From the NCBI RefSeq assembly GCF_000737315.1, contig NZ_JMCB01000004.1:310001-374000 (forward strand): DNA of 64,000 nt, given 5' to 3'. The notes beneath the pieces were generated by a model, which was not told where the DNA came from, did no database searches, and was given only the letters and a program-made list of their open reading frames with translations. Of the stretch, positions 1 to 29,755 are shown piece by piece. How positions within the stretch are numbered: the first letter of the stretch is position 1; every line of letters starts with the position of its first letter. Origin of the DNA: Hyalangium minutum (GTDB lineage: Bacteria > Myxococcota > Myxococcia > Myxococcales > Myxococcaceae). A program made the position numbers and the translations under genes.

Positions 1-1
1 G

Positions 2-142
2 ATTCCGCGCGGAGAGGTCCAGGTGTTCGCGCGGAGGACGGCCGCCGAGGAGGGCAAGCAGACCTTCCACGTGGCCTCGTGGGATACGCAGGGACGGCCC
101 GTCGCCCTCTTTCGGGGGTTCGCCGTGCAGGAGGTGCCGTGA
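2..142 (+). CDS. 3' end of upstream gene (partial), C-terminus resembles a PKS dehydratase/hotdog domain
   Basis: Frame 2 reads IPRGEVQVFARRTAAEEGKQTFHVASWDTQGRPVALFRGFAVQEVP* with TGA at 140-142 overlapping the next GTG (GTGA coupling); the 'DxxGRPVAxxxGF' ending resembles PKS DH C-termini. Confidence 0.55.
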   Translation: MPRGEVQVFARRTAAEEGKQTFHVASWDTQGRPVALFRGFAVQEVP

Positions 143-3100
143 GCGCCGCGCTGTTCCGGCCTGTCGCCATCGTGGGCGTGGGGTGTGTCTTTCCCAAGGC
201 GAACAGCCCCGAGGCCTTCTGGACGCAGCTCTCGACAGGCGCCACGGCCCTCGGCGAGCTGAACGAGCGGGAGTTCCGGCCGGAGTGGTACTACGACCCC
301 TCGCGCACCGCCCCCGACCGTACCTCCTGCCGCTACGGCGCACTCGTGGACGAGCCCCGGCTGGATGCCAGGAAGTACCGCATCCCGCCGAGGGTGCTGC
401 AGGACATGCACCGGATGCAGCTCGCCTTCATTGATGCGACGGCCCAAGCGCTGGAGGATGCCCGGGGCGGCATGGGCCAGGTCGCGCCGGAGCGCATGGG
501 CCTGGTGCTGGGTTCTCTCGGCGGTGGCCTGCGTCCCGGCACCCGCGTCCAGAGCCGGCTCTTGGACATGCTGCGCTCGCTGTCCGCGTCGGCGACGTTG
601 GCCTCGCTTCATCCGGGCCTCACTTCCGAGCTGGCGGCGGCGCTCACCCAGCAGCTCGAGGCGGAGCTGGCCGGAACCAGCGAGACGGAAGCGACCGCGT
701 CGTTCAGCAGCATCTGGGGCGGACGGGCCGCCAAGCTCTTCGACTTGCGGGGGCCGCACTTCTCCGTGGACGCGGGCTATGCGTCCACGCTCGCGGCCAT
801 CCAGAGCGCCAGCCAGCAGCTCAACTCCGGTGACTGCGATGGGGTGGTGGCGGCGGGTTGCAGCCAGTTGCTGACGCCGCATGACCTCGTCGCGTTCAGC
901 AAGCTCGGGGGGTTGGGGACCTCCGTGCTGGCGCCGTTCGACCGGCGCTCGAGCGGGACCCTGCTGGGCGAAGGGGTTGGGGTGTTCGTTCTCCGCCGCT
1001 TGGAGGATGCCCTGGCGGCCGGCGCAAAGGTCTATGCCGTCATTCGGGGCATCGGCGCGGCATCGGGTGGCAGGGGCACCTCCCTGGTGGCGCCGAACCC
1101 GAAGGGGCAGATCCTGGCGATGCGCAGGGCCTATGCACAGGCCGAGTACGGGCCCCGCGACGTCCAGTACGTCGAGTGCCATGCCTCGGGGATTCCCCTG
1201 GAGGACGCGGCCGAGTTCCAGAGCCTGCGGGAGGTCTGGAGCGAAGGGGAAGGCGCGTCCCCCGTCATGCTGGGAGGCGTCAAGGAGCTGACCGGGCACC
1301 TCCAGGCGGCCTCGGGCGCGGCGGGCCTGCTCAAGACCACCCTGGCACTGTTCCACAAGGTGCTGCCGCCGCAGCACTCGTTTCAGGAAGGCGCCGAGGG
1401 AGTCGACCTGCGCGGCACGCCGTTCTACTTCACGCGGGAAGGCAGGCCCTGGCCAGCCGTCGCGAATGGGCTGCGGCGGGCTTCCGTCAGCGCCTTCGGC
1501 TTCGGCGGGCTGAGCTACCACCTGACGCTCGAGGAGTTCTCCGCCGACGCGCATGCGCGCCTGGCCCGCTCCCTGCCGCCCCCTCGGCCCGCCGAGCCGA
1601 TTGCCATCGTGGGACTGGGAGGCGTGTTTCCCGGCGCGGAAAACGCCGAGCAGCTCTGGAGCAACCTGCTGGCGAAGCACTGCGCGATTGGAGCCATTCC
1701 GCCCGAGCGGGCCGAGACCGCTCGCTACCTGGATCCGGCGCGCAAGAGCAAGGTCCGGCCCTACACCAACCTTGCGGGCTCCATCGTCGACGGGAGCTGG
1801 CCCCAGGAGCGGGTCCGCCTCCCTCCCGAGGCCGTGGCGCAGATCGACCGGGGACAGAGCTGGACGATGAAGGCGGCCCTGCAGGCGCTCGACGACGCTG
1901 GCTGGCGGCCCGGGGGCGTCGACTCCCAGCAGGTCGGGGTCGCGATGGGCTACATGCCGCCGCTGGAGCGGGAGTTCCTGACGCAGGCGCGCGTGTACTA
2001 CGCCGAGTTCGACGGGCGGCTGGCGGAGCAGCTGCGGCGGCGCGGCGTCGACGATGCGACGGCGGCGAGAATCCGTGAGGAGGTGGAGCAGGACTACAAG
2101 CGGGAGTTGCCGCCCATCACCGAGCAGACGTTGCCGGGCTACCTGGGCAGCCTCGCCGTGGGCCGCGTCGCCCATCACCTGGACCTCCAGGGACCGGCGA
2201 TGATGGTGGAGTCCGCCTGTGCCTCCAGCCTGGCGGCCATGGAGATCGCCGCCAACTTCCTGCACACCCGGGAGTGCGATCTGGTGCTGGCAGGCGGCAT
2301 GTATGCCTCGCTCGGAGTGGATGCCCTGGTCCAGTGGTGCTCCTTCGGGGGGTTGTCCCAGAACGGCTCCTTCCCCTTCGATGCACGGGCCGACGGCTAC
2401 GTGACGAGCGAAGGGGCGGCCATGCTCGCGCTGAAGCGCCTCTCGGATGCGCAGGCGGCCGGCGATCGCATCTACGCGGTGATTCGCGCCGTCGCGGGCG
2501 CGACCGACCCGAAGAGCGCCTCCATCTGGGCGCCCTCCTCGGAGGGCCAGGTCCAGGCGGTGCGCAGGGCCGTGGAGAAAGCCGGGGTCACGCCGGACGA
2601 CATCCAGTACCTGGAGGGACATGGTACGGGGACCCCGGTGGGAGATCCCATCGAGGTGGAGACCTATCGCTCGGTCTACGGGCAGGGCCGCCCGGGGAGG
2701 CGAGTCCTCCTGGGCTCCATCAAGTCGAACCTGGGGCACTTGAACTCCGGGGCCGGCGCTGTGTCGCTGCTCAAGGTCGCGCTGTCCCTGCACCATGGGC
2801 AGGTCCCGCCCAACGCGGGCTTCGCGACGCCCAATCCGTCCATTCCCTGGAGCGCGCTGCCCTTCCGGGTGCCGGCGGAGGCCGAGCCCTGGGTGGCCTC
2901 GGAGAACAGCGTCCGGCGAGCGGGCGTCACCTCGCTGGGGCTGGGCGGCACCAGCTTCCACGCCATCGTGGAGGAGCCTCCCCCCCGGGCCTCGCCGCGA
3001 ACCGTTCCAGCGCCTGTGGGCGCTCAACTGAATCCACCGATTGTTCAAAGGGCACGTGAGATGACCCCGGAACCGCAAGCAGCCACCCGAACGTCCATGC

Positions 3101-6100
3101 CCATCGCCATCATCGGGGCTTCGTGTCAGGTGGCAGGCGCCGATACGCCCGAGCAATTCTGGCAGTACATCGTGGAGGGCAAGCCCCGGTTCACCCAAGT
3201 GCCGGCCTCCCGCTTTCGCTGGGAGAGCTTCTACAGCCAGGACCCCTCCGAGACGGAGAAGGGCGAGGTGTGGAGGGCGTCCTTCTTCAACGACCTGGAG
3301 CTGCCGTGGCGTGAGTACAAGGTCGGGCCGAAGATGCTCGATGAGCTCCACCGCTGCGAGCTGTACACGGTGGAGGCGATCCGCCGGGCCCTGGCGGACG
3401 CGCGCCTGCTGGACCGTGCATTCCCCCGGGAGCGGACGGCCGTCATCATGGGCGGGACGGAGATGGGCTACGACTCTCGCATCACCCATCCCTTCCTCTG
3501 GCACCTCCCTCAGTTGATGGAGTCCATCCGGGCGGCGATGGATGGCTCGGGGCTTCCCGAGGACGCCCGTCGCCGCATCCTGGAGGACGCGGAGAGGAAC
3601 TTCCGCGAGGTCAGCCATCGCGAGTTCACCCGAGGCACCGTCTCCGGCATGAGCCTGGCCCTGGGGCGGGCGTGCTCGCTGTTCGACTTGAAGGGGCCGC
3701 ACTACGTCGTGAACGCCGCCTGCTCGTCCGTCATGGCGGCGCTCGAGAACGCGGTCAACGGGCTCACACTGCGGGACTACGACGTCGCGCTGGTGGGAGG
3801 CACCAGCCCCTACCTGACGCCCGCGCCCTTCGTCACCTTCGAGCGCATGCGGCTGCTGACGCGCGAGGCGCAGCCTCGTCCCTTCGACGCCGGGGCCAGC
3901 GGAACGCTCTTGGGGGAGGGCACTGGCTTCTTCGTGCTGCGACGGCTCGACGATGCGATCAAGAACGGGGACACCATCCTCGGCGTCATCCGGGGAATCA
4001 GCGGGGCGAATGACGGGCGCCGAGGCGCGCTCCTCAGCCCGCCCGTGGAGGCCCAAACCCTGGCGGCCCGGCGCGCCTATGAGCTCGCGGGGTACGCGCC
4101 CGACTCGGTCCAGTACCTGGAGTGTCACGCCAACGGCGTCGAGTTCCTGGAGGCCTCCGAGCTGGAGGCGATGGGGCAGGTGTTCGGCAGCCGCGCACCC
4201 CGAAGCCTCACGATTGGCTCGACCAAGAACATGGTGGGCTATCTGCTCTCGGCCTCGACGATGCCGGGCCTCGTCCGCACGTTGATGGCCCTGAAGCACC
4301 AGGCGCTGCCGGCCCAGGGGCACGTGCGCCAGCTGCGCGACGAGCTGCGCGTGGAGGGGACGCCCTTCCAGGTCCTCTCGGAGCTTCGCCCTTGGAATGC
4401 CCCTGCTGGCGGAGTGCCCCGCCGTGCGGGCGTGAACTCGCTGGCGATGGGCGGACAGGCCTACCACCTCACGTTGGAGGAGTACCTGCCCGAGTACCAC
4501 GCCCGGCTGGCCGCGAGCCTCGGCCCCCCGCCGAAGCGGGAGCCCGTGGCCGTCGTGTCGTACGGAGCCCTGGCGCCCGGCGCGCACAACAGCGACACGT
4601 TCTTCGAGAACGTGCTGGCGAAGAAGGACCAGATCATCCGGGTCCCCAAGGACCGGTTCGACATCGACCGGTACTACGGTCCCGAGGGAGTGACGGGGAA
4701 GATCTACTGCCCGCTGGGAGGCTTCCTTGAGGACTTCACCTTCGACGAGAAGGCGTTCCTCATCCCGCCGATGCTGGCGGCCCAGCTCGACCGCTCCCAC
4801 ACATTCGCGCTGACGGCCGCCGCCGAGGCGCTCCGCAAGACGACCGCGCCGCAGAAGGTGCCGCAGCGAACCGCCGTCTTTCTGGCGGACATGCCCGGGC
4901 GCCTGCGCGAGCGCGAGGTGGAGCTGCGCATCTCCTATACCGAGATGGATGCACTCTTCCGGCGGGTGCTCCAAGACAACGGGGTGCCCACCGCCACCAC
5001 CGAGCGGATCGCCCGCCAGGCCGAGGGCCACTTCAAGGCAGACATGGCGCCCATGACGCCCTACACCCACGCGGGGTATGCCGGCAGCACGGAGGCTACG
5101 ATCATCGCGCATGTCTACGGGTTCAAGGGCGCCACCAGCATCTTCGAGAGCACCTGTGCGTCGTCGCTGGCCGCCATCGAGGCGGCCGTGGCGAGCCTCC
5201 AGCTGGACCTCACAGACGTCGTGCTGGCGGGCGGCACCTTCGCGGATCTGGAGCCCGATCTGTATGCCATCAACTGCACCTTCCGGGGCATGAGTGGAAC
5301 CGGGAGCCGCCCCTTCGACGCGGACGCGTCCGGGTTCATCCCCGGAGAAGGCGCGGGCGTCGTCGTGCTCAAGCGGCTGAAGGACGCGGAGCGGGATGGC
5401 GACACGATTCTCGGCGTCATCAAGGGGATTGGCTCCTCCAGTGATGGAAAGGGCAAGTCCCTGCTCGCGCCCAACCAGGTGGGCCAGGAGCTGGCGGTGC
5501 GGCGTGCTCTGGAGCGAGCGGAGATCTCACCGGCTTCCATCCAGTACATTGAATGCCATGGCACGGCGACCCCGGTGGGAGACTTCACCGAGATCTCCAC
5601 CTACTCACAGGTCATGCAGGGGCGTCCGCCGCGCTCCGTGGGAATCGGCTCGGTGAAGTCGATGATTGGCCACCTGCACTCAGCCGCGGGCGTCATCAAC
5701 CTTGTCAAGGTGTTGAAGAGCCTGGAGCGCAAGGTGCTTCCGCCGCAGATTCACTTCGAGCGCCCGAACCCGGACATCACGTGGGACACGGTGCCGTTCG
5801 AGGTCATCACGGAGCAGCGGCCCTGGGCCGCTCCCGCCGATGGGGGGCCACGCCGGGCGGGCGTCAGCGCCTTTGGCATGGGCGGCACCAACTACCACCT
5901 GGTGGTCGAGGAGTACCTGGGGCGACAGGAGGCCGAGGCACTGAGTCCTTCGGCCTTCCCCATGGTGGGCACGGTGGTGGAGCGCACCGCGGATTCGCTG
6001 ACTGCGGTGCGAGAGCTGAGCCTGGAGACGGATCCCTACCTGCGCGAGCACCGGGTGAATGGGGTCGGGGTGCTCCCCGGTACCTTCGGCATGGAGATGA

Positions 6101-6912
6101 TGGCCGAGGCGGCCCTGCTGCTTCGGCCTGGCCTCCACGTGGAGGGGCTCGAAGACGTTCGCTACCACCAAGCCGCCAAGGTCTGGGAGGGGAAGCGCTC
6201 GCGGCTCATCGCCACCGCCCGGGCGGGACAGGCGGACGCCGCCGGGCGCGTGTCCGTGGCGCTCCAGGTGGACCTGGAGCTCAAGCCTCGCGTGGACCTG
6301 CCCACCGTCCGCCGCAAGCTCTACACGGGCACCGTGGTGCTCTCCGCCCGGCGGGCCGTTCCCCCGGGTGACGCCGTGACGGTGGATGCCAGGACGGCGG
6401 CGCTCTGCACGACCGAAGGCCGTCAAGACTTCCGGCCGCTCTACAACCACGGCGAGGAGACCTACCTGGGGTCCTGCATGCAGGGCTGCCGCTACCTGCG
6501 CTTCCTGTCGGACACGCAGCAGGCGGCGTGGGTGGTGGAGGAGGGGCTGAACGGCCTCTTCTCGTTCACCTCGGGGCCGCGAATGCGAGTGGCGCCGCTC
6601 GCGCTCGATGCCATCAACCACGCCGCTGGCATGGCCGCCTACTACCAGCTCGAGCGCCTCGTTCTTCCGGAGGGCGTGGATCGTCTGCGGCTCCATGAGG
6701 CGATTCCCGTGGGAGAGGAGATCGCCGTCCTCTGTACCTACCTGGGCGTCAGCGACGGAATCGCCAGGCTTCGGGCCGTGGCCTTCCAGCCGCAGACACG
6801 AAAGGTGTACGTCGAGATCGACGGGCTCCGCTTCAGCATGCTGGGGCACCTGGGCCCGGTGCTCAAACCCATCATTGATGGCCGCCAGAAAGGGACGCGG
6901 GGCCGGGCGTAG
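139..6912 (+). CDS. PUFA-synthase-like type I PKS: KS0-KS-KS*-KS-DH, no AT/KR/ACP/TE
   Basis: Start moved to GTG 139 (GGAGG at 130-134, coupled to upstream stop). Four KS repeats (PVAIVG, PIAIVG, PIAIIG, PVAVVS), active-site motifs DAGYAS / ESACAS / NAACSS / ESTCAS, and a C-terminal DH with HRVNGVGVLPG and LDAINH motifs. Confidence 0.9.
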   Translation: MSAALFRPVAIVGVGCVFPKANSPEAFWTQLSTGATALGELNEREFRPEWYYDPSRTAPDRTSCRYGALVDEPRLDARKYRIPPRVLQDMHRMQLAFIDATAQALEDARGGMGQVAPERMGLVLGSLGGGLRPGTRVQSRLLDMLRSLSASATLASLHPGLTSELAAALTQQLEAELAGTSETEATASFSSIWGGRAAKLFDLRGPHFSVDAGYASTLAAIQSASQQLNSGDCDGVVAAGCSQLLTPHDLVAFSKLGGLGTSVLAPFDRRSSGTLLGEGVGVFVLRRLEDALAAGAKVYAVIRGIGAASGGRGTSLVAPNPKGQILAMRRAYAQAEYGPRDVQYVECHASGIPLEDAAEFQSLREVWSEGEGASPVMLGGVKELTGHLQAASGAAGLLKTTLALFHKVLPPQHSFQEGAEGVDLRGTPFYFTREGRPWPAVANGLRRASVSAFGFGGLSYHLTLEEFSADAHARLARSLPPPRPAEPIAIVGLGGVFPGAENAEQLWSNLLAKHCAIGAIPPERAETARYLDPARKSKVRPYTNLAGSIVDGSWPQERVRLPPEAVAQIDRGQSWTMKAALQALDDAGWRPGGVDSQQVGVAMGYMPPLEREFLTQARVYYAEFDGRLAEQLRRRGVDDATAARIREEVEQDYKRELPPITEQTLPGYLGSLAVGRVAHHLDLQGPAMMVESACASSLAAMEIAANFLHTRECDLVLAGGMYASLGVDALVQWCSFGGLSQNGSFPFDARADGYVTSEGAAMLALKRLSDAQAAGDRIYAVIRAVAGATDPKSASIWAPSSEGQVQAVRRAVEKAGVTPDDIQYLEGHGTGTPVGDPIEVETYRSVYGQGRPGRRVLLGSIKSNLGHLNSGAGAVSLLKVALSLHHGQVPPNAGFATPNPSIPWSALPFRVPAEAEPWVASENSVRRAGVTSLGLGGTSFHAIVEEPPPRASPRTVPAPVGAQLNPPIVQRAREMTPEPQAATRTSMPIAIIGASCQVAGADTPEQFWQYIVEGKPRFTQVPASRFRWESFYSQDPSETEKGEVWRASFFNDLELPWREYKVGPKMLDELHRCELYTVEAIRRALADARLLDRAFPRERTAVIMGGTEMGYDSRITHPFLWHLPQLMESIRAAMDGSGLPEDARRRILEDAERNFREVSHREFTRGTVSGMSLALGRACSLFDLKGPHYVVNAACSSVMAALENAVNGLTLRDYDVALVGGTSPYLTPAPFVTFERMRLLTREAQPRPFDAGASGTLLGEGTGFFVLRRLDDAIKNGDTILGVIRGISGANDGRRGALLSPPVEAQTLAARRAYELAGYAPDSVQYLECHANGVEFLEASELEAMGQVFGSRAPRSLTIGSTKNMVGYLLSASTMPGLVRTLMALKHQALPAQGHVRQLRDELRVEGTPFQVLSELRPWNAPAGGVPRRAGVNSLAMGGQAYHLTLEEYLPEYHARLAASLGPPPKREPVAVVSYGALAPGAHNSDTFFENVLAKKDQIIRVPKDRFDIDRYYGPEGVTGKIYCPLGGFLEDFTFDEKAFLIPPMLAAQLDRSHTFALTAAAEALRKTTAPQKVPQRTAVFLADMPGRLREREVELRISYTEMDALFRRVLQDNGVPTATTERIARQAEGHFKADMAPMTPYTHAGYAGSTEATIIAHVYGFKGATSIFESTCASSLAAIEAAVASLQLDLTDVVLAGGTFADLEPDLYAINCTFRGMSGTGSRPFDADASGFIPGEGAGVVVLKRLKDAERDGDTILGVIKGIGSSSDGKGKSLLAPNQVGQELAVRRALERAEISPASIQYIECHGTATPVGDFTEISTYSQVMQGRPPRSVGIGSVKSMIGHLHSAAGVINLVKVLKSLERKVLPPQIHFERPNPDITWDTVPFEVITEQRPWAAPADGGPRRAGVSAFGMGGTNYHLVVEEYLGRQEAEALSPSAFPMVGTVVERTADSLTAVRELSLETDPYLREHRVNGVGVLPGTFGMEMMAEAALLLRPGLHVEGLEDVRYHQAAKVWEGKRSRLIATARAGQADAAGRVSVALQVDLELKPRVDLPTVRRKLYTGTVVLSARRAVPPGDAVTVDARTAALCTTEGRQDFRPLYNHGEETYLGSCMQGCRYLRFLSDTQQAAWVVEEGLNGLFSFTSGPRMRVAPLALDAINHAAGMAAYYQLERLVLPEGVDRLRLHEAIPVGEEIAVLCTYLGVSDGIARLRAVAFQPQTRKVYVEIDGLRFSMLGHLGPVLKPIIDGRQKGTRGRA

Positions 6913-6941
6913 TCCCGCGCCCACCCTGCGCGACTCACACC

Positions 6942-8540
6942 ATGTCTTCTCCTCCGTCCTTTCAGACGCCGTTCCTCGTGGGGGTTCGCGCGGCCGGCCT
7001 GTTGCTGTGTGTGCTGTCCTGGCCTCTGGGCGGGGCGGCTTGGCTCGTGTTCGCCTGGGGCGCGCTGAGCCTGCTGCGCATGCCTCGCCGGAGGCTGCTC
7101 GTGGAGCTCGCCATCGCCTCCATGCTGTTGCTCGCGGTGGCGCCCGGCTGGGCGCCGCTGGTGGGCGCCACCGTGATGCTGCTGGTGATTCCGCTCGCGC
7201 CCGAATCAGGGGCCCTGAACCTGAACGGCCTGGACCGCTACTTCTACCTGCAGGACGGCCCGAACTCGCGGATGAACTCGCACCACTTCGTGGACACGGA
7301 CGCCCCGCTGGAGCGCGAGCCGCTGGAGCGCGCCGTCGCCGCCATGCTGCACGAGGTGCCCCTGGCCCGCTCGTTCGTGCGCGAGGCGCCGCTGAGCGTT
7401 GCGCGGTTCGTGGCCCGGCGCCCCTGGGTGGGAGCGGCGGAGCTTCTGTGCTGGTCCGACGCTCCCGTCGAGGCGGGGGACTCGCGCGCGCTGGACGCGC
7501 CCATGGACCTGCGGCGCCTGCCACCGTGGCGGGTCATCCACGCGCCTCGATCCGAAGGGGGGTACCGCCTGTGCCTCACGGTGCACCACAGCGCCGTCGA
7601 TGGGGAGGGGGGCCTGTTGATGCTCGACCTGCTGGTGCGCCGCTACAACGAGCTGCGCGCGGGGAGGCCGCTCACGCCGCAGGTCCCTGCTCACGGTGGC
7701 CAGCGGCTGCGCGAGATGCTGCGGCCTCGGGGGCTGGGCTGGACCCTGCGGATGATGAGGCGTCACGTCGCCGCCGCCGACAAGCACAAGGGGGCGTCGG
7801 CCCTGCTCGCGGATGATGCCGCCGCACATCCCACGCACACCCGGCACCACCTGCTGCGCATTCCGGGAGCCACTTGGCAGCGCCTCAAGGCCGTCTCCAC
7901 CGCCAAGGGGGTGAGCCGCAATGATCTGTTGGTGGGTGCCGTCTTTCGCGCGGCCAGCGCCCTCCGCCAAGAGCGCGGGTGGCCCGAGCTGCGCTTCCGG
8001 TCCTTTGTGCCCGCGAACCTCCGTGAGGCGCTGGGGGTTCCCTCCGGGCTGGGCAACTACCTGGGAATGCTGGATGTCGTGGCACTCCCGGAGGACATCC
8101 ACTCCCCGGAGCTGGAAAAGCGCCTCTCCGAGTCCATCCGGAGCAAGCGCGTCCTCGATGAGGCCGTGGGCTTCATGGTCAACATGGGGCTGCTGACGCT
8201 CATGCCACCGGCGATGTTTAGAGCGGCGCTGCGCAGCAACGAGGCCGATCCCTCCTCGTTCATCTACTCGATGGTCGTGAGCACCATCCGTCAACCCGAG
8301 GAGCTGGCCCTGCCCGAGGGCGTCACCACCGAGCGGGTCTTGGTGCGCGGCTCACTCACGGGGAGTCCCTGCTTCGGCGTCGTCATCATCCACTCCGGTG
8401 GACAGGTGCATGGAGTGCTCGAGTACCTCTCTCCGACCGTCCGCGACGAGACCGCCCGCGAGTTCGCCGAGAGATGGCTGGCCGAAGTCGATCGGTTGGC
8501 AGGGGCGGGAGACCTTCATGAACAACATCGTGCGGGATGA
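6942..8540 (+). CDS. Membrane-anchored condensation-domain/CoA-dependent acyltransferase (PapA5/WS-DGAT-like fold)
   Basis: About 85 hydrophobic N-terminal residues followed by a domain with VHHSAVDG (HHxxxDG) and an FVPANLR motif. Confidence 0.75.
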   Translation: MSSPPSFQTPFLVGVRAAGLLLCVLSWPLGGAAWLVFAWGALSLLRMPRRRLLVELAIASMLLLAVAPGWAPLVGATVMLLVIPLAPESGALNLNGLDRYFYLQDGPNSRMNSHHFVDTDAPLEREPLERAVAAMLHEVPLARSFVREAPLSVARFVARRPWVGAAELLCWSDAPVEAGDSRALDAPMDLRRLPPWRVIHAPRSEGGYRLCLTVHHSAVDGEGGLLMLDLLVRRYNELRAGRPLTPQVPAHGGQRLREMLRPRGLGWTLRMMRRHVAAADKHKGASALLADDAAAHPTHTRHHLLRIPGATWQRLKAVSTAKGVSRNDLLVGAVFRAASALRQERGWPELRFRSFVPANLREALGVPSGLGNYLGMLDVVALPEDIHSPELEKRLSESIRSKRVLDEAVGFMVNMGLLTLMPPAMFRAALRSNEADPSSFIYSMVVSTIRQPEELALPEGVTTERVLVRGSLTGSPCFGVVIIHSGGQVHGVLEYLSPTVRDETAREFAERWLAEVDRLAGAGDLHEQHRAG

Positions 8541-9489
8541 GGCAGCAGGCCGGTGGGCGTGGATCTTTCCGGGACAGGGCTCCCAGAAAGTGGGCATGGG
8601 GCGGAAGATGCTCGAGCGCTCCAGCGCGGCCCGGCGGGTCTTCGAGGAGGCATCGGACGCCATCGGGGTGGACCTCGCCCGGCTGTGCCTGGAGGGGCCT
8701 GCCGAGACGCTGATGGCGACCGAGAACGCCCAGCCGGCCATCGTGACGGTGAGCGCGGCCTGCCTGGCGGAGCTGGAAGAGCGAGGGCTCGCGCCGCCGG
8801 TCGTGGCAGGGCACAGCGTGGGGGAGTTCTCGGCCCTGGTGGCGGCCCGGTGCCTGCCGCTGGCGGCGGCTGTCCGTGCGGTGCGGAAGCGGGGGCAGCT
8901 CATGGCGAGCGTGAGGGCGCCTGGAGGAATGCTGGCCGTCATGGGCCTGGATGGGGCGCGGGTCGCTGAGCTGTGCCGCGAGGCCGCGCGGGACGGAGTA
9001 GTCGTGGTGGCCATCCACAACAGCCCGCAGCAGTTCGTGCTCTCTGGAGACCTGGGGGCCCTGGAGCGGTTCAAGGACGTCGCCACCTCCGCCGGAGCCA
9101 AAGAGTGCGTGATGCTGGAGGTGAGCCACGCCTTCCACTCCCCGCTGATGGGGCAGATTCACGAGGAGTGGCGGGCCGTGGTCGCGAGCCTGCAGCTCCG
9201 GATGCCCAGGTGCCCCGTGTTCCTCAACACGACGGCGAAAACGGTGAAGACGCTGGTCTGTATCCGGCAGTCACTGCTGGTGCAGATCACGGCTCCCATC
9301 TTGTGGATGCAGTGTGTGCAGGGCCTCGTCGAGCTGGGCGTGACGCGGGTGTTGGAGGTCGGAGACAGCAAGGTCGTGTCCTCCCTTGCGCGGCGGTCCG
9401 TCCCGACCCTCCAGACGCTGACGTTTCAAGAGCCCACGGTCTTGAATCAGCTGGGCGGCGCGGACACCTCGCGCGCAACCCCCGTGTAG
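8518..9489 (+). CDS. fabD: Malonyl-CoA:ACP transacylase (FabD-like, standalone AT)
   Basis: FPGQGSQ, GHSVG, RGQLM, AFHS motifs; start ATG 8518 overlaps the upstream gene end. Confidence 0.9.
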   Translation: MNNIVRDEAAGRWAWIFPGQGSQKVGMGRKMLERSSAARRVFEEASDAIGVDLARLCLEGPAETLMATENAQPAIVTVSAACLAELEERGLAPPVVAGHSVGEFSALVAARCLPLAAAVRAVRKRGQLMASVRAPGGMLAVMGLDGARVAELCREAARDGVVVVAIHNSPQQFVLSGDLGALERFKDVATSAGAKECVMLEVSHAFHSPLMGQIHEEWRAVVASLQLRMPRCPVFLNTTAKTVKTLVCIRQSLLVQITAPILWMQCVQGLVELGVTRVLEVGDSKVVSSLARRSVPTLQTLTFQEPTVLNQLGGADTSRATPV

Positions 9490-9537: not shown

Positions 9538-10656
9538 TCAGGCCGCGAGCTTGTTGCTCACGTGCTGGTGCACCACGCGGTGCGTCGAGGACAGCCAGAG
9601 CAGCGGAAAGCCAATCTCCGGGTACTGCGAGATCATCTCCCGGAGGTAGCGGTACATGCTGATGAGCAGCGCCATCGCCATCACCCCCAGCAGCCCGTGG
9701 CGAAGCGCGGGCTGGAGCGTTTCGGGCAACAGCGAGAGGGGGAGCACCAGGAGGAACAGCACGGACTCGGCTGTCAGCCACGCCGGAGGCTTGTTGACGA
9801 GCTGGCGCGCATGCACGCCTACCGCGAGGCTGCCCATGGCGAGAGCGACGAGGGCCCGGGCGGAGAAGACGTCGCTCCAGCCGCGGAGCCAGAGCAGGTA
9901 GAGGCCGAGGATGAGCGCCGGCGCCAGGAGGATGCGCACGTAGAAGCGCAGCGAGGAGAGCGGCGAGCGGGACATAAGCGCGAGGTCCTGCACCAGCGAC
10001 CAGAAGCCAGCGCCAAAGGCCACGACGCTCAGGAGCGAGTAGGTGAGCTGGAACCCCGGCTCCTCGAGAATCGACACGCCGAAAAGGCAGACGGACAACC
10101 CGAGGAACAAACAGAAGACATAGTTCCAGAGGTGGTTGATGTACGGGTCTCGCATGAGGCCCGTCGCGTAGTAGCGGCACAGCCCGAGGTAGAAGAACAG
10201 CTGCCCGGTGGCGGTGAGCAGGACGTAGGGCAGGAAGACAAAACCCTGGCGAGGGCCGAGCTGGGCGACGATCAGCACGGCCATTGCCGAGTTCATGACG
10301 TCGACCCAGTGGTCCCAGAAGTGGCGGGCGGTGGATTGCGTGCCGTTGCGACGGGCCTGGGTGCCATCCATGGCATCCAGACAGAAGTGGAGCACCCGGC
10401 AGAGCACCCAGAGCGCATACATCCACTGGGCCCGCTCGAAGGTGTGGACGGCGGCGAGCAGGAACAGGTGGAGCAGCAACCCAGGAAGGCCGAGGACGAC
10501 CGGGGAGAGCCTGTAGGGGAGATGGCGGACGGCGAAGCTCCGGCATCTCTCCCGGACAAACCGGATGAGGGCATCCTCTTCCGGGCGCTTGTAGCTCTGT
10601 TGCGAATCGAGGACCAACACATGGGGCTCCAGCGCCCGTGCCTGCTGCTTGCTCAT
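9538..10656 (-). CDS. CDP-alcohol phosphatidyltransferase, CEPT/EPT-like multi-pass membrane protein
   Basis: DAMDGTQARRNGTQSTARHFWDHWVD matches DxxDGxxAR...DxxxD (consensus G replaced by R); about 9-10 hydrophobic segments. Confidence 0.8.
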   Translation of the reverse strand: MSKQQARALEPHVLVLDSQQSYKRPEEDALIRFVRERCRSFAVRHLPYRLSPVVLGLPGLLLHLFLLAAVHTFERAQWMYALWVLCRVLHFCLDAMDGTQARRNGTQSTARHFWDHWVDVMNSAMAVLIVAQLGPRQGFVFLPYVLLTATGQLFFYLGLCRYYATGLMRDPYINHLWNYVFCLFLGLSVCLFGVSILEEPGFQLTYSLLSVVAFGAGFWSLVQDLALMSRSPLSSLRFYVRILLAPALILGLYLLWLRGWSDVFSARALVALAMGSLAVGVHARQLVNKPPAWLTAESVLFLLVLPLSLLPETLQPALRHGLLGVMAMALLISMYRYLREMISQYPEIGFPLLWLSSTHRVVHQHVSNKLAA

Positions 10657-10792
10657 TGCCTGTGTCCGTTCACGCCGGGCGGGTGTCGTTGCCCGGGGCG
10701 AGACGAACCATGCAAGGGATTGGGGCTGGGAGCGGTGAACTGCCTCACACGAGGGATGTGGGCTGCGTCACACCCCTCGGTGGGGGTTCAAA

Positions 10793-11287
10793 TCACGGAG
10801 TGCAATTCTCGACATGCACTTCGAGGATGGCTCCCTGGATGTTGTAGTACGAGTCCCAGGCCAGGTATTGCACATAATAGATACCTTCGACGGCATCGTC
10901 CGGCCCCGGGCCAAAGTCATCCGAATCGCCGCTGCCCGGAGCCCCATCCTGATCGTCATCGCCGGTGTTGTACCGGTGCACTTCCAGCGGTTGACCACAC
11001 GCGTCCGTGGCGGTGACCTCGGGCGGCTCCCAGGTATCCACACCACACTGCAGTTTAATGACCGCGTCGCTCAGGCTGAGCGTGGGCGCCCCGCCATTCT
11101 GGGCGGCCGTGCACGGCTCCTCGCCGAGGGACTGGCTCGAAGTCTGCTTCGGCTGGGAATTGGAGAGGAGGGTTTCCTCATCCGTGGGCTGCTGCCCACA
11201 AGCGCTGACAGAGACGGCAAGGACTGTCAGCGTTCCGAGGATGAGGGAGCGGCGCCACGGTTGAGAATCGAGAGGGAAAAGACTCAT
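10793..11287 (-). CDS. Putative lipoprotein with acidic Ig-like (HYR-like) domain
   Basis: Start ATG 11287 with GGAGG RBS; lipobox VSAC; 'TATDACG...Y.V.Y.AWD' Ig-like pattern and Asp/Gly-rich loop DDDQDGAPGSGDSDD. Confidence 0.65.
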   Translation of the reverse strand: MSLFPLDSQPWRRSLILGTLTVLAVSVSACGQQPTDEETLLSNSQPKQTSSQSLGEEPCTAAQNGGAPTLSLSDAVIKLQCGVDTWEPPEVTATDACGQPLEVHRYNTGDDDQDGAPGSGDSDDFGPGPDDAVEGIYYVQYLAWDSYYNIQGAILEVHVENCTP

Positions 11288-11488
11288 CGGCGATGCCTCC
11301 AGTGCGGGTATGTACAACATCACTGAGAGTATCAGAACCAAGACATGAATTGTCGTTGTGAATGCCTTTGGGCTCTCTTTTTTTTATTCTTGCGCCGCTG
11401 AAAAATGGAGAGGAATTGGAGTGAAGCTTGCTGGCTGTGCGCAGGCTGTGCGCCTGGGCAGGAATTCTTTCGCGGAAACAGAGAGCCC

Positions 11489-13243
11489 TCAGGCGGCCTC
11501 GTTCTCGGCCAGCAACGCGGCAAAGGGGGAGGGGCCCTCTCCGAGTTCCTTGTAGAGGGCCTCCACCTTCTCCAGCTCCCGCTTGAGCACCTTGTGGTGG
11601 TTGCGATTCTTCAGGAGGTTTTCCCGCCCCAGCGCTCGGAATGCCTCCTCGCGGCCCATCTGCTGCACCGCCTGCCCCAGTACGATGCCCACCAGCGCCT
11701 CGGTCAGCCCCAGGTCCAGCGGCGTGCCTCGGCGCTTCGCCTCCGCGATGAACGCCTGGGCGGCCGCGATCAAGGCCGTAGGTATCGAGGCCGCCGCCTT
11801 GCTCTCGGCCTGGCCCGTGGCGCCCTCGTACTCCAGCGCCCGCGAGACATGGCCCGAGGAAAGCGTCAGCTCCGCCGAGGGCCCGTGCTCCACCAGCGCC
11901 AGCGTGTAGGCCCGGCGGATGATGTTGTCCAACTGCCGCAGGTTCCCCGGCCACGCACGGCCGCTCAGCACCTGCTCCGCTTCGGGCGACAGCTGCGCCT
12001 GCCCCTGCGGGAACTGCTCCTTGTGCCGCCGTGTCACCATGTAGTGGGCCCACAGCGGGATTTCGTCTTGGCGCTCGTCCAGCGAGGGCACCCGCAGCGG
12101 CAGCACGTTGATGCGGTAGTACAGGTCCTCGCGGAACCGGCCCGCGCGTACCGCCTCGCGCAGATCCACGTTCGTGCCGATGATGAACCGCACGTCCGCG
12201 CCCCGGTCTCCCGCCCCGTCTCCCAGCACCCGGTACGAGCGCTCCTCCAGCACCCGCAGCAGGCCCGCCTGCGCCTTGAGCGACAGCTTGTCGATCTCGT
12301 CGATGAAGAGTGTGCCGCCCTCCGCTCGGCCGATGCTCCCCAGGCTGTCCTTCACCGCGCCCGTGAACGCGCCCTTCTTCCAGCCAAAGAGCTCCGCCAT
12401 CTGCAGCTCTTCGGGCACTGCGAGCAGCTCCAGCACCTCGAAGGGGCCCTTGCGCCGGCTCGAGCGCGAGTGCACCCACCGCGCCAGCCGCGACTTGCCC
12501 GCTCCCGTCGGCCCGCTGATCAGCACGCTCTCCTCCTGCTGCGAGAAGACGTTCAGGATGGGCAGCAGGTTCGCCATCGACTTGCCCACCACGGGCAGGT
12601 ACTCGTCCACCTCCGCGTGGGGCGCTGGCCGGAACGGCAGGCCCGTGAGGTACGGTGCCGCCACCTCCGCGATCGTCTGCAGCCGATCGATGCACTCGCG
12701 CCAGATGAAGTCCTGGCCCATCGCCGTGGGGCTGTCCGCCTCCAGTGAGATCATCCCCCCAATCCCCGCGCCCAGCGCCCGCAGGGGGATGACGCACACG
12801 TGCGAGGCCTGCCGGCTCAGGAAACTCTGGCGGCTCTCCTGACTGGTGAAGCTGCCGGGCAGCGGCTCCTCGGCCTTGTCCGGCAACTGCGGCAGGTACG
12901 GCTTCAGCGCCCCCAGCGTGACGTCCACGAAGACGGGGCTTCCGTGCTGCACCACCGAGCGCCACGCCGTGGCTGACACCAGGCTCGGCGCGCCGCGCTG
13001 GCCCGTGCTCCCTGCCGACTGCACCGCCGTGGCGCCTTGCTCGAGGATGGCCAGCTTCACGTAGCCCCCTGCGGGCCGTAGGTGAACCATGCTCCGCAGC
13101 ACCTTGGCGCGCCCGGCGTACTTGCTGGCGGCGATCGTCCGCTCGGTCAGGCCCATCATGGCCGACAGGGTCCGCGCGGCTGCATCCTCGAAGTCTCCCG
13201 ACTTCGACAGCGCCACCACCAGCGAGGACAGATCGTCTTGCAT
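11489..13243 (-). CDS. Sigma54-dependent enhancer-binding protein with GAF-like N-terminus
   Basis: True start MQDDLSS at 13243 (the ORF-track 5' extension is a shadow of the patatin gene); GPTGAGKS, ELFGWKKGAFTGA, FIDEID, FREDLYYR, WPGNLRQL. Confidence 0.9.
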   Translation of the reverse strand: MQDDLSSLVVALSKSGDFEDAAARTLSAMMGLTERTIAASKYAGRAKVLRSMVHLRPAGGYVKLAILEQGATAVQSAGSTGQRGAPSLVSATAWRSVVQHGSPVFVDVTLGALKPYLPQLPDKAEEPLPGSFTSQESRQSFLSRQASHVCVIPLRALGAGIGGMISLEADSPTAMGQDFIWRECIDRLQTIAEVAAPYLTGLPFRPAPHAEVDEYLPVVGKSMANLLPILNVFSQQEESVLISGPTGAGKSRLARWVHSRSSRRKGPFEVLELLAVPEELQMAELFGWKKGAFTGAVKDSLGSIGRAEGGTLFIDEIDKLSLKAQAGLLRVLEERSYRVLGDGAGDRGADVRFIIGTNVDLREAVRAGRFREDLYYRINVLPLRVPSLDERQDEIPLWAHYMVTRRHKEQFPQGQAQLSPEAEQVLSGRAWPGNLRQLDNIIRRAYTLALVEHGPSAELTLSSGHVSRALEYEGATGQAESKAAASIPTALIAAAQAFIAEAKRRGTPLDLGLTEALVGIVLGQAVQQMGREEAFRALGRENLLKNRNHHKVLKRELEKVEALYKELGEGPSPFAALLAENEAA

Positions 13244-13411
13244 GCAGTCACCCAAGTCCTTGAATTCCGGCGCGCGAACCAGCGGCCAGCCAGGCGCGGC
13301 ACCGGCGCATCCTCTCAGAGGCCGTGGCTCCCGTGAAAGCCTCGACGGGCTTGCTCGCCGTGCGTGCAGCCGCGCCCGCACCTGCGGCATCGTAGTAAAG
13401 GAAGGAGGCGC

Positions 13412-15871
13412 ATGACGAGCGAGCACAAGAAGGCAGAGACCCTGGGTGGAAAGGGAGAGGGCCTCCCTCCGCTGCACTACAAGGCGCTGAGCCAGTGGCT
13501 CGAGGCCCACCCGGATCTGGTGCGTCAGCACTTCGTGGCGAAGACGTTCCCGCGGGAGACGCGCGTCTTTCCGTCGGAGGCACTGCAGTCCGCGGGACTG
13601 CCGAGGCTCGCGATCCTGCTCTCGGGGGAACTGGCTCTGACGCAGCTCGCTCCGGGCGCTCTGGCGCCGCACAAGGCGCTCTACCGCGGCGATCTGTGGG
13701 TCAACCCCAACAAGCCCGGCGCCAAGCCCCGCGAGCCCATCGTGGCCATCCATCTCCAGGCCGTGGCCACGAGCGAGGCCTTGCTCTTGACCGAGCAAGG
13801 GCTGCGCTCGATGCCCGAGCAGGATGCGAGAGAACTGGAGAAGCTCCTTGATGCCTACGCGGGGCTGCACTCGACCCGCGCCACCTTCTTCCAGGCAATT
13901 CGGAAGACGCTCCAGTTCAGCAGGGCCGCCGTGCGGCACCTCCATGCGCTGCTCGACACGGTGGATGTGCGCACCTACGAGAAGGGGAGCGCCAGCGGAG
14001 ACATCGTCGTCCCGCAGGGCAGCACCGACGAGGCGCACAAGGGCATCTTCCTGGTGCTGGAGGGACAGCTCGGCGAGTGGCGGGATCCACAGAGTTCCGA
14101 GACGCAGCCCGTGCTCATTCGCCCGCTCTACGAGGGGAGCATCTTCGGGGACGCAGTGCTGCACAGCGACGCGCCTCCACCGGCCACGGTGAAGCTCCAC
14201 TCGGACAAGGCGCGCGTGGCCTTCCTGCCGGAGCTGAACAGCCTGAAGCTCATCCAGCGCTCGCAGTTGTTCGCCAGCTCCGTGGGCTCCGCGCCGGGTG
14301 AGATCTGGCAGCGCATCGCACAAGTGGGCTCCGCGCTGGCGCCTCCTCCCGAGGTGGTGCTGTTCCGCTGCGATGCGCCAGACATCCCGTTGCCGATGCT
14401 GATCCAGGGCGTGGCCGAGGCCACCCACCTGAGCTACGAGGATCGCATCCTCCGAGTGGAGCTCTTCCACTCCGCGCAGTCTCAGGGAACGGTGCCCGAG
14501 GAGCCGCCGGAGCCGCGCCCCGGAGAAGTTCCGGTCTACCGGCTTGGGGCGCATGACGGACCCGCCGCAAGCCGGGCGCTCCACGCGTTGGCGTTGGCGC
14601 TCCAGGGGCGTTGGGACTACCTGTTCGTCCACGTGGATCCGCGGCTGTGGCATGGGCTCACGCCTCCCCTGGGGAGCGCCCGGGGCTTCCGGCCGTTCTT
14701 CCTGGCGGGGGAGGACGTCTGGAAGGTGGTTACGGTCTCGCGGGATCCGCTCGCGGTTCCGCCACCGCCCGGCTTCGACAACGGCTCCGTGCTCTGCGCG
14801 GCGCTGCTGCCCCCTGGGACAGAGCGCGAGCCGGGCCCCGCGTTTCCGGCTGGGACGGTGCGTCTCCCGCTGAACCTCCGGAACTTCTCCAGCCACCGGA
14901 CCTTCTCCCAGTGCTCCTCGGCCGAGCAGGAGCTGTTCCGGCGCTGGGGCCGCGCCATCACCGAGCGGCTCGTGGGCATCGCGCTGGGAGCGGGCGGCTC
15001 GTGGGGCTACGCCGAGATCGCCCTCATTCGCGGAATGCAGGAGCGGAAGATCCCCATCGACGCCGTCAGCGGGACGAGCTTCGGGGCCATGACAGGGGCG
15101 TTCTACAGCGCGTTCGGCGACGCGGGCCTGGACCTGCTGCTGAAGGAGGGCCACAAGTTCAACGCGGTCATCCTCGCCAGCATCATCAACTCGGGCGCCA
15201 TCACGCTGTTCATCGATCACCTGCTCGGGCGCCAGCGGCTGGAGAAGGTCCCGCTGCCCTTCTTCCCCGTGGGGACGAATGTCTCCGAGTCCCAGGCGTG
15301 GGTCCTCCAGAAGGGGACCCTGGGCGCAGCGGTGCGCTCCAGCGGCATCATGCCGGGGCTGCTCTCGCCGGACTTCACCGATAACTACAGCCGCGTCGTG
15401 GATGGCGCCTTCATCAACAGCGTGCCGGTGAGCATCCTGATGAGCCAGCGCGCCAACCTGATCGTGGGCACCAACGTGCTGTCGACGCCTCCGGATCAGA
15501 AGGAGCAAGGACCGCTGCTGCCCGGCGCCCTGGGGTGGTTCCTGCACGGGCTCAACCCGGTGGGGCGCATCTCCGACGCGGTGCGCTCCACGCTGATCCT
15601 GTTCCACACGGGAGGCGAGCAGGCCGGCTCGGGGGCGGATGTGACGTTCGACAGCCCATTCTCGCCGCTGCCGCCTTGGGCCTTCGCACAGGGACAGGCC
15701 GTCGTGGACCGGGCGGCCGCCGTCCTCGGACCGACGCTCGATGACATCGAGATGCGGTGGAAGATCATGGCCACGCCGCGGTGGGATCTGCCGTCGAAGC
15801 TGCGCCTCTTGAAGGAGGCCGGCGAGCTGGGGCCGCTGGAGGGCCTGCTGGCGTCGAGGATGCTGGCGTGA
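13412..15871 (+). CDS. Cyclic-nucleotide-binding-domain patatin-like phospholipase (NTE/RssA-like)
   Basis: ATG 13412 after GAAGGAGG; cNMP-like repeats (IFLVLEGQL...FGDAVL); patatin motifs GAGGSWG, GTSFG, VDGA. Confidence 0.8.
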   Translation: MTSEHKKAETLGGKGEGLPPLHYKALSQWLEAHPDLVRQHFVAKTFPRETRVFPSEALQSAGLPRLAILLSGELALTQLAPGALAPHKALYRGDLWVNPNKPGAKPREPIVAIHLQAVATSEALLLTEQGLRSMPEQDARELEKLLDAYAGLHSTRATFFQAIRKTLQFSRAAVRHLHALLDTVDVRTYEKGSASGDIVVPQGSTDEAHKGIFLVLEGQLGEWRDPQSSETQPVLIRPLYEGSIFGDAVLHSDAPPPATVKLHSDKARVAFLPELNSLKLIQRSQLFASSVGSAPGEIWQRIAQVGSALAPPPEVVLFRCDAPDIPLPMLIQGVAEATHLSYEDRILRVELFHSAQSQGTVPEEPPEPRPGEVPVYRLGAHDGPAASRALHALALALQGRWDYLFVHVDPRLWHGLTPPLGSARGFRPFFLAGEDVWKVVTVSRDPLAVPPPPGFDNGSVLCAALLPPGTEREPGPAFPAGTVRLPLNLRNFSSHRTFSQCSSAEQELFRRWGRAITERLVGIALGAGGSWGYAEIALIRGMQERKIPIDAVSGTSFGAMTGAFYSAFGDAGLDLLLKEGHKFNAVILASIINSGAITLFIDHLLGRQRLEKVPLPFFPVGTNVSESQAWVLQKGTLGAAVRSSGIMPGLLSPDFTDNYSRVVDGAFINSVPVSILMSQRANLIVGTNVLSTPPDQKEQGPLLPGALGWFLHGLNPVGRISDAVRSTLILFHTGGEQAGSGADVTFDSPFSPLPPWAFAQGQAVVDRAAAVLGPTLDDIEMRWKIMATPRWDLPSKLRLLKEAGELGPLEGLLASRMLA

Positions 15872-16836
15872 TCCCTGTTCGCATCCTGGGCACCTCGGGG
15901 CTGCTGCCGGGACGGGCCGTCTCCACCGAGGAGGTGGCGCGGCAGCTCGGCAGGGATCCCGCCAAGATTGAAGCGCGCACGGGCATCCGGACTCGCTACT
16001 GGGTGGAGCCTGGTACCCGGATGACGGACCTCGGCGTGGAGGCGCTCCGGCGCGCGCTCGATGCCGCGAAGATGGCGCCCTCGGATCTGAGCCGCATCAT
16101 CTTCGTCTCTTCCTCCGGTGGGGATGCGATCACCCCCGCCACGGCGAGCATGATCTCCGGGGCGCTGGGGCTCGCGGGCTCGTGCGACGCGTTCGACCTC
16201 AACAACGCCTGCATGGGTTTTCTCTCCGCCTTCGATATTGCTGCCCGCTCCATTGCGACTGGGATGGGGCCGGTGGGGATCGTTGTCGTCGAGTGCATCT
16301 CCCGCGCGCTCGATCCCAGCCATCCCCGGCCGTACCTCGTCTTTGGAGATGCGGCGGCCGCCGCGGTGCTCGGGCCCGCGCGAGAGGGCGAGGGTGTGCT
16401 GAGCGTGGCGCTCGCCAACAACGGCACGCTGCCTCCGGACACCGTCTGTGCTCAGCCTCTGTTCACCGGCAAGGTGGAGCGGGTCCAGTTCGTCGTCTCC
16501 AAGGAGGAGATCCTCGAGATCGCGCTGAACGCTCTGGGCACGGCGACGAACACGGTGCTCCAGAAAGCCGGGGTGGAGCTGGGCGACATCCAGTGGGTGC
16601 TGCCTCATCAGCCCAATGGCGCGCTGCTCGACGCGATCATCGACAGGCTCGGGTTGGATCGAACGCGGCTCATCCCCATGGTTCAGGATGTGGGTAGCGT
16701 GGCAGCGGTGTCGATCCCTTACAGCCTCGATCTGCTGATGCGGACCGGCAAGGTGCGCCCCGGAGATCGGATCCTGATGGTCGGCGTGGGGGCGGGTGTC
16801 TCTTACGGTGCGCTTCTCTATCAGGTGGGCGGATGA
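15868..16836 (+). CDS. 3-oxoacyl-ACP synthase III family protein (Cys-His-Ser variant)
   Basis: GTG 15868 coupled to the patatin stop; NNACMGF, HQPNG, G(S)VAAVSIP where canonical enzymes have GNTSAAS. Confidence 0.85.
   Translation: MIPVRILGTSGLLPGRAVSTEEVARQLGRDPAKIEARTGIRTRYWVEPGTRMTDLGVEALRRALDAAKMAPSDLSRIIFVSSSGGDAITPATASMISGALGLAGSCDAFDLNNACMGFLSAFDIAARSIATGMGPVGIVVVECISRALDPSHPRPYLVFGDAAAAAVLGPAREGEGVLSVALANNGTLPPDTVCAQPLFTGKVERVQFVVSKEEILEIALNALGTATNTVLQKAGVELGDIQWVLPHQPNGALLDAIIDRLGLDRTRLIPMVQDVGSVAAVSIPYSLDLLMRTGKVRPGDRILMVGVGAGVSYGALLYQVGG

Positions 16837-28345: not shown

Positions 28346-29755
<1,410 letters not shown>

Follow-up and report, generated by a model that had tools for sequence, protein, structure and literature searches.

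A tetra-ketosynthase protein of Hyalangium minutum is a fusion variant in a polyketide synthase probably of the dawenol type

How a single protein comes to carry four ketosynthase (KS) domains in a row, two of them with altered catalytic residues, and what such a protein does, is the question raised by a stretch of 64,000 nucleotides from Hyalangium minutum (contig NZ_JMCB01000004.1 of assembly GCF_000737315.1, positions 310,001 to 374,000; the whole stretch is called the window). The gene, here called tetra-KS, lies at 139..6912 on the plus strand and encodes 2257 aa in the order KS1-KS2-linker-KS3-KS4-DH, where DH is a dehydratase. It is a rare fusion variant of what is most probably a published family, the dawenol-type polyketide synthases (PKSs) that resemble polyunsaturated fatty acid (PUFA) synthases, and its architecture is not unprecedented. 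The protein is probably one subunit of an iterative PUFA-synthase-like PKS of this type without an enoyl reductase (ER), to which it would contribute two KS pseudo-heterodimers and an active DH, and its gene is the result of a fusion.

The tetra-KS gene was a single open reading frame (ORF) with a GTG start and a stop codon at 6910-6912. The GTG at 139 overlapped the stop TGA (140-142) of the preceding gene as GTGA. This upstream gene, with its 3' end at 1..142 on the plus strand, encodes a stand-alone PS-DH-type dehydratase of 284 aa in the source contig. The Pfam scan of the tetra-KS protein matched the N- and C-terminal ketoacyl-synt domains four times (PF00109, E 1.4e-191; PF02801, E 6.4e-134; four stretches each), and also KAsynt_C_assoc and PKS_DH_N, the N-terminal half of the PKS dehydratase. 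No acyltransferase (AT), ketoreductase (KR), PP-binding or thioesterase domain was found in the protein by Pfam, and the scan agreed with an earlier, sequence-only reading of four tandem KS and one DH with no AT, KR, acyl carrier protein (ACP) or thioesterase. The protein scored 1116 bits against TIGR02813 (PfaA; cut-off 1010), a score summed over four KS stretches, none of which matched beyond the N-terminal KS part of the 2582-position profile. The minus-strand ORF at 5680-7524 and other overlapping ORFs were rejected as high-GC shadow frames, since coding-type GC content at third codon positions (GC3) was seen in the plus frame only.

The catalytic residues differed regularly along the protein. 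KS1 (148..1578, plus strand; aa 4-480) is a degenerate partner with Tyr214 at the Cys position, in the motif DAGY214AS (codon TAT, 778-780), and with H348, K382 and H387 kept. KS2 (1570..3021, plus strand; aa 478-961) has an intact triad of C694, H828 and H867. KS3 (3079..4518, plus strand; aa 981-1460) is again degenerate: with C1195 (3721-3723) and H1330 still in place, it has Tyr1368 (TAT, 4240-4242) instead of the second His. KS4 (4519..5973, plus strand; aa 1461-1945) has the intact triad C1673, H1807 and H1845, and the PKS-type dehydratase that follows (5959..6912, plus strand; aa ~1941-2257) has both H1971 (HRVNGVGVLP) and D2157 (DAINH). These results matched the earlier assignments for KS1, KS3 and the complete triads of KS2 and KS4, down to the codons. 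In the HMMER alignment with the sequence of the PfaC KS-chain-length factor (CLF) crystal structure (6riw), Tyr214 fell on the Cys of DAACASS, and in the MAFFT alignment of 125 KS domains Tyr1368 fell on the second catalytic His (K..GH motif).

The KS1 and KS3 substitutions were conserved, with identical or synonymous codons, in the orthologues of other genomes, and therefore they are not sequencing errors. The KS1 Cys position was CAT (His) in Myxococcaceae bacterium GXIMD 01537 and Myxococcus stipitatus. Tyr214 and Tyr1368 both use the rare codon TAT in a genome with a GC3 of about 88%, and these codons are a single transition away from TGT (Cys) and CAT (His), respectively. All four domains had also been described as carrying the insert typical of PUFA-synthase KS domains. 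From the GxxLGS strand to the GR.A..FDL.G region, ~70 residues were counted in each of the four KS, compared with ~15 in a modular KS (7zma), 56 in the PfaC KS and 65 in the PfaC CLF. The insert was thus present throughout, but the motif that follows it was divergent in KS4, where it reads ATIIAHVYGFKGAT.

The sequence-only reading had recognised no characterised cluster with this architecture. In Stigmatella aurantiaca DW4/3-1 (CP002271.1, ~1.92 Mb), however, a cluster with three KS pairs was collinear with the whole H. minutum operon, in the order discrete AT, KS(Y)-KS-AT, ACP-KR, AAT-DH, dead-KS-KS, KS(C-H-Y)-KS-DH, phosphopantetheinyl transferase (PPTase) and DH. Its KS-KS-DH protein (P0004, 1277 aa) showed 69% identity over its full length to aa 975-2254 of tetra-KS (1280 aa); this KS3-KS4-DH part makes up 57% of the H. 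minutum protein. The core set common to both clusters comprised KS-KS-AT, tandem ACP-KR, AAT-DH, KS-KS, KS-KS-DH, PPTase, DH and discrete AT. The two clusters were also alike in having no ER and the same active-site substitutions, including the Cys-His-Tyr first domain. They differed in that S. aurantiaca has three KS pairs on three separate proteins, whereas H. minutum has four, two of them fused on one protein. The additions in H. minutum are the fourth pair, KS1-KS2, fused in front, and a putative membrane-anchored HHxxxDG acyltransferase.

The dawenol PKS of S. aurantiaca was reportedly described by Osswald et al. in 2014 (J Biotechnol 191:54). In citing papers, CP002271.1 is given as the dawenol cluster (MIBiG BGC0000044) with a 'PUFA-like' polyketide, and the dawenol synthase was called 'a highly unusual polyketide synthase' in 2014. 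Other papers touch on dawenol only briefly. A separate GenBank entry of five genes from strain Sg a15 (AIS92915-AIS92919) agreed with the DW4/3-1 cluster in its first and fifth proteins and in gene order. The DW4/3-1 locus is most probably the published dawenol polyene cluster. On an H. minutum polyene, on PUFA-like myxobacterial polyenes and on RedX/PigJ didomain descriptions, the literature searched gave nothing usable, and the secondary lipid synthase survey of Shulse & Allen does not cover Stigmatella or Myxococcus.

The origin of the four-KS form was seen by comparison with its closer relatives. Among 5.8 billion proteins the four-KS-DH architecture was present in three sequences, that of H. 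minutum included; the other two, from GXIMD 01537 and one metagenome contig, were both 83% identical to it. The operons of M. stipitatus (CP147913.1) and Corallococcus terminator BB12-2 were like that of H. minutum in having eight KS, a 530-aa acyltransferase and the AT, but they have two genes with an ATGA stop/start overlap in place of tetra-KS. The first of these encodes KS(Y/H)-KS-AT* (1299-1309 aa, 79-83% identical to aa 1-952), in which the AT* active site reads GEGAGE instead of GHSxG and has no nucleophile; the second encodes KS-KS-DH (~1280 aa, 81-85% identical to aa 975-2257). The junction of the two genes in M. stipitatus is ...CAAGTGAGATGACC (stop TGA, start ATG), that of H. minutum is CACGTGAGATGACC, read through as Arg-Glu-Met975-Thr, and that of GXIMD 01537 is CAAGTGTGATGACC. 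The fusion linker (aa 953-974) and Met975 together occupy 2995..3063 on the plus strand, where ATG 3061-3063 is the former start codon of KS-KS-DH. The linker keeps the GTGAGATGACC string of the ancestral stop/start overlap, and ~350 aa of dead AT are deleted. Given the split genes of M. stipitatus and C. terminator and the stop/start scar at the junction, the comparison indicates that the tetra-KS gene is a secondary gene fusion, with the dead AT* deleted and the upstream part shifted into the downstream frame. Loss of AT* and fusion were common to H. minutum, GXIMD 01537 and the one metagenome contig. Furthermore, KS1-KS2 showed 67-74% identity to the KS-KS of the first gene of the cluster, and the two were sister clades in the tree, which indicates that they are paralogues. 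By a deletion, a KS-KS-AT* gene that is itself paralogous to the first gene lost its AT*, and its KS-KS came into frame with KS-KS-DH.

The same polarity was found in the KS pairs of the whole family. In 60 proteins, the second domain always had Cys-His-Lys-His and the first was always degenerate, in one of three types. The order of degenerate then intact held in every pair examined (four in H. minutum, three in S. aurantiaca and two in loci from metagenome-assembled genomes, MAGs), and the two covalent pairs of tetra-KS were, as previously noted, arranged with the degenerate member first, opposite to the KS-CLF order of PfaC. Domains of the KS1 type have Tyr, His or Phe at the Cys position with His-Lys-His kept; the first gene of every dawenol-type cluster carries this type as well, as do distant KS-KS-AT-ACP proteins of uncultured bacteria. 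The KS3 type is Cys-His-Tyr in H. minutum, GXIMD 01537, M. stipitatus, the metagenome protein P0002 and S. aurantiaca DW4/3-1, and its orthologues elsewhere have Ser-His-Glu (P0007-P0010) or Gly-His-Tyr (P0011). The third, dead type, represented by the first KS of the 953-aa KS-KS protein of the operon, has Ala-Gly-Ser/Ala-Asp.

In the neighbour-joining tree the first domains formed one clade and the second domains another. The mutual identity was 34-37% among the first domains of H. minutum (KS1, KS3 and the first KS of the 953-aa protein) and 36-41% among the second domains of its tandems. The true CLFs (the 6riw CLF and two Pfa-like proteins) formed the outgroup at ~20% identity, and the degenerate domains were 18-23% identical to the 6riw CLF. 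Since genuine CLFs fall outside both KS clades, the tree indicates that the degenerate domains are an independent invention and not inverted CLFs, and the earlier term 'CLF-like' does not hold in the sense of orthology. The dN/dS values of H. minutum against GXIMD 01537 and M. stipitatus were 0.24 and 0.19 for KS1 and 0.16 and 0.17 for KS3, compared with 0.19 and 0.18 for KS2 and 0.17 and 0.19 for KS4. Purifying selection is equally strong on inactive and active domains, and the inactive ones are not decaying.

Compact relatives with two pairs were present in uncultured Deltaproteobacteria and Acidobacteria (L011 10001-22288 and the P0039 locus). They consist of [KS(F/Y)-KS-AT-ACP], [dead KS (Thr-Gln-Thr-Phe)-KS-KR-DH] and a PPTase. 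Like H. minutum, they have inactive-then-active didomains, an aromatic residue for Cys in the first domain and no ER, but their ACP, KR and DH are fused to the KS pairs, the identity is ~40% and they have no cultured producer. In addition, a sister family of the form KS-KS-AT(-ACP-KR-DH) keeps Cys-His-His in both tandem KS (P0032, P0036, P0040, P0042, P0047, P0048 and P0058), so these proteins apparently hold two active KS fused head to tail. P0090, which is related to the sister family, keeps the Cys of its first domain without the first His and the Lys.

The pairing of the domains was modelled with AlphaFold2, for KS1-KS2 and KS3-KS4, from alignments of 44 and 42 sequences, and the models were compared with the PDB by Foldseek. 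The KS1-KS2 model (pLDDT 92.4, pTM 0.94) gave TM-scores against 6riw of 0.79 (query) and 0.83 (target), with a root-mean-square deviation (RMSD) of 3.7 Å over 972 alignment columns. The KS3-KS4 model (pLDDT 91.0, pTM 0.93) gave 0.77 and 0.81, with an RMSD of 4.2 Å over 966 alignment columns. The 6riw structure spanned the whole of each model, whereas every other match covered one KS at a query TM-score of ~0.4. The structure prediction of KS-KS pairing that had been proposed earlier thus gave whole-length superposition in both cases, and it supports two predicted intramolecular pseudo-dimers, KS1:KS2 and KS3:KS4.

In these models the H. minutum pairs resemble PfaC KS-CLF of Moritella marina (6riw), which is likewise a covalent tandem of the KS fold forming an intramolecular pseudo-dimer. 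The tandem ACPs and the PUFA-type KS insert of ~55-70 residues are further points of likeness to PUFA (Pfa) synthases. However, PfaC has the active KS first and the CLF second, and the H. minutum pairs are inverted. The inactive domains of H. minutum group with KS and not with CLF and retain at least part of the His residues, and their Cys position is occupied by Tyr, Cys or Ala, where the 6riw CLF has Glu. Moreover, Pfa synthases proper have a PfaD-type ER and a FabA-type DH, and the H. minutum cluster has neither.

The operon in which tetra-KS lies is co-directional and tightly packed (contig JMCB01000004.1 of GCA_000737315.1), and the window begins inside it. Five genes lie upstream of the window: KS-KS-AT (1387 aa), ACP4-KR (1228 aa, four PP-binding stretches), an AAT-like Ntn-hydrolase domain fused to PS-DH (705 aa, L002 17851-19968), KS-KS (953 aa) and the PPTase (282 aa). 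The ACP and KR, to be looked for among the upstream genes, were found in the ACP4-KR gene. The stand-alone DH and tetra-KS come sixth and seventh, followed by a 532-aa condensation/PapA5/WS-DGAT-like protein (6942..8540, plus strand) and a discrete FabD-like AT of 323 aa with GHSVGE and HAFH motifs (8518..9489, plus strand), with which the conserved part of the operon ends. The cluster contains four KS pairs (eight KS, four of them intact), tandem ACPs, one KR and three PKS-type DHs. Neither a PfaD-type ER nor a FabA-type DH/isomerase was among the called genes of the operon, and its dehydratases are of the PS-DH / PKS_DH_N kind only.

The 532-aa protein has a hydrophobic N-terminus of ~90 aa, a weak condensation/PapA5/WS-DGAT match and an intact HHSAVDG motif (aa 215-221). 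Among dawenol-type clusters, this acyltransferase-like protein was found in the eight-KS version only, and a genome scan with it gave four loci only. A 50%-identical homologue occurs in a groundwater Deltaproteobacteria MAG (L009 10001-11551) without PKS neighbours. The 705-aa AAT-DH protein, with its AAT / peptidase C45-like domain (PF03417, E 2e-9), was conserved in all dawenol-type clusters seen, and it might be a candidate chain-release or transfer enzyme. The discrete AT was considered as specific to eight-KS clusters, and this was rejected because S. aurantiaca carries one upstream of its first gene.

For the mechanism, we infer a division of labour among the KS pairs, a polyene product and a CLF-like role for KS1 and KS3. 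The C-terminal members of the pairs, KS2 and KS4, would perform decarboxylative Claisen condensation. KS1 and KS3 would be unable to condense and would serve as obligatory dimer partners that probably shape the acyl tunnel, as a functional analogue, not an orthologue, of the chain-length factor. The four tandem ACPs of ACP4-KR, which is encoded nearby, would carry the substrates as acyl and malonyl thioesters, and the KR with three PS-DH dehydratases and no ER would yield a conjugated polyene. In PUFA synthases, KS_A and KS_C-CLF elongate different chain-length windows (PMC9702510). By analogy, the KS pairs of the cluster probably divide the elongation cycles by chain length. The product of H. 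minutum would then be a longer or otherwise extended dawenol-like polyene, and the membrane-anchored HHxxxDG acyltransferase next door may off-load the chain onto an acceptor. From two pairs (MAG) through three (S. aurantiaca) to four (H. minutum type), the series suggests that an added pair extends or alters the product. No biochemical study of inverted KS pairs was found in the literature searched.

Several points weigh against this reading. The KS1 type keeps His-Lys-His and a conserved aromatic residue (Y/H/F) family-wide, which is more than would be needed in a purely structural partner, and the Cys of KS3 is kept in all eight-KS clusters and may indicate acylation. The pairing is an AlphaFold prediction only, of these two pairs, to which KS2:KS3 and inter-subunit pairing are alternatives. 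The identity of the DW4/3-1 locus (L003) with BGC0000044 rests on the record accession, the organism and the 'PUFA-like' description, not on coordinates. We know of no eight-KS cluster with a known product, and no characterised cluster with the same tetra-KS-DH protein came to light. It is possible, but unlikely, that KS1 is a malonyl-ACP decarboxylase priming chain synthesis in the manner of KSQ loading domains, with the extra pair starting a second chain and the 532-aa HHxxxDG acyltransferase joining the chains. This takes up the earlier suggestion that two chain lengths are made or two chains condensed, which is speculative. Domains of the KS1 type resemble KSQ domains and type II PKS chain-length/initiation factors in having the KS fold, no nucleophilic Cys and both His, and, like KSQ, they are encoded at the start of the assembly line beside an AT. 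H348, K382 and H387 are (near-)invariant and the Cys is replaced by Y, H or F in all of them, from myxobacteria to distant MAGs; the relatives of KS1-KS2 in the first gene would hold the priming position; and the extra pair is in every case accompanied by the extra acyltransferase. A PUFA-synthase KS is also known to make acetyl-ACP via malonyl-ACP decarboxylation (PMC9702510). However, KSQ has Gln where the KS1 type has Tyr, His or Phe and KS3 has Cys, and no precedent is known to us for these residues supporting decarboxylation as Gln does. The residue even varies between Tyr in H. minutum and His in GXIMD 01537 and M. stipitatus, and thus no specific chemistry is conserved. The KSQ domain sits in a separate loading module, whereas KS1 is covalently paired with an active KS; the other two degenerate types have lost His residues and yet hold the same position in the pair; and a single ACP4-KR protein serves the whole cluster.

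The retained Cys of KS3 leads to another, still less likely explanation, that KS3 is a non-elongating but acylatable domain in which the chain is held on C1195 and handed to KS4 or the DH, similar to the KS0 domains of trans-AT PKSs. Loss of the second His is expected from general KS enzymology to abolish decarboxylative condensation and not transacylation, and C1195 and H1330 are kept in all five members with Cys-His-Tyr named above. Nevertheless, the Ser-His-Glu and Gly-His-Tyr orthologues in other dawenol-type clusters argue that the Cys is dispensable in the family. Moreover, trans-AT KS0 domains keep the Cys and lack the first His (HGTGT motif), not the second, whereas KS3 keeps H1330 and loses the second His and KS1 keeps both. 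That KS1 and KS3 are decaying relics, or that the fused frame is an assembly or sequencing artefact hiding two ordinary proteins, is very improbable. The old start context at the internal Met975 and the rarity of the fused form would fit it, but three independent assemblies, one of them a complete genome, have the fused ORF, with different linkers and the same frame; KS1 and KS3 do not differ from the active domains in dN/dS; and conservation of the degenerate domains extends over the whole family. A joint reading was also considered, in which KS-Y would represent a novel kind of gatekeeper or priming decarboxylase, polyene length or a second chain would be programmed by how many pairs there are (2, 3 or 4), and the eight-KS cluster would make an undescribed membrane-bound polyene lipid via the HHxxxDG acyltransferase; this is likewise possible but unlikely. 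The reading of tetra-KS as a fused subunit with two pseudo-heterodimers is preferred.

The surroundings of the operon were less conserved. The region upstream of the cluster (L002 1551-9741) encodes a diiron oxygenase set like PaaABCD, an AMP-dependent ligase, an MMPL transporter together with a TP_0789-like lipoprotein, and a 454-aa condensation-like protein that has no HHxxxDG. Beside the GXIMD 01537 cluster the ligase, oxygenase and MMPL genes are absent, and their membership of the cluster was rejected as unsupported. The 454-aa protein is encoded beside the S. aurantiaca cluster as well; the idea that it and the 532-aa protein are paralogues of a duplicated module was rejected, as they have no detectable similarity and the 454-aa protein has no HHxxxDG. 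Past 9.5 kb, the genes of the window have regulatory or housekeeping functions, and other genomes do not have them conserved beside the cluster. The operon is directly followed by the lipid-related genes at 9538-16836, which are not kept beside the cluster in M. stipitatus or GXIMD 01537. The genes in this region encode a CDP-alcohol phosphatidyltransferase (9538-10656, minus strand), a sigma-54 activator (11489-13243, minus), a patatin-like phospholipase with a weak cNMP-binding match (13412-15871, plus) and a FabH-like KAS III (15868-16836, plus). Further on, a Ser/Thr kinase with AAA_16 (18401-21901, minus), a protoglobin-coupled histidine kinase (22994-24148, plus), an NtrC-type response regulator (28346-29755, minus) and an HD-GYP-like response regulator (38754-39971, minus) follow in this order. 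Such dense signalling genes (18401-39971) are typical of myxobacteria and unrelated to the tetra-KS finding.

Inverted pairs with the inactive domain first thus appear to be the building block of the whole family of ER-less PUFA-synthase-like polyene synthases. How several KS pairs divide the cycles on one ACP array is a question that these enzymes have in common with PUFA synthases. The H. minutum protein is a natural experiment, in which a fourth pair has been added, the adjoining AT has proved dispensable and two pairs have come to lie in one polypeptide. As a construct it would be convenient in structural work and in tests of whether pair number sets chain length. The fusion brings no new enzymatic principle; it is valuable mainly because it offers access to what the degenerate KS partners do in these inverted pairs.

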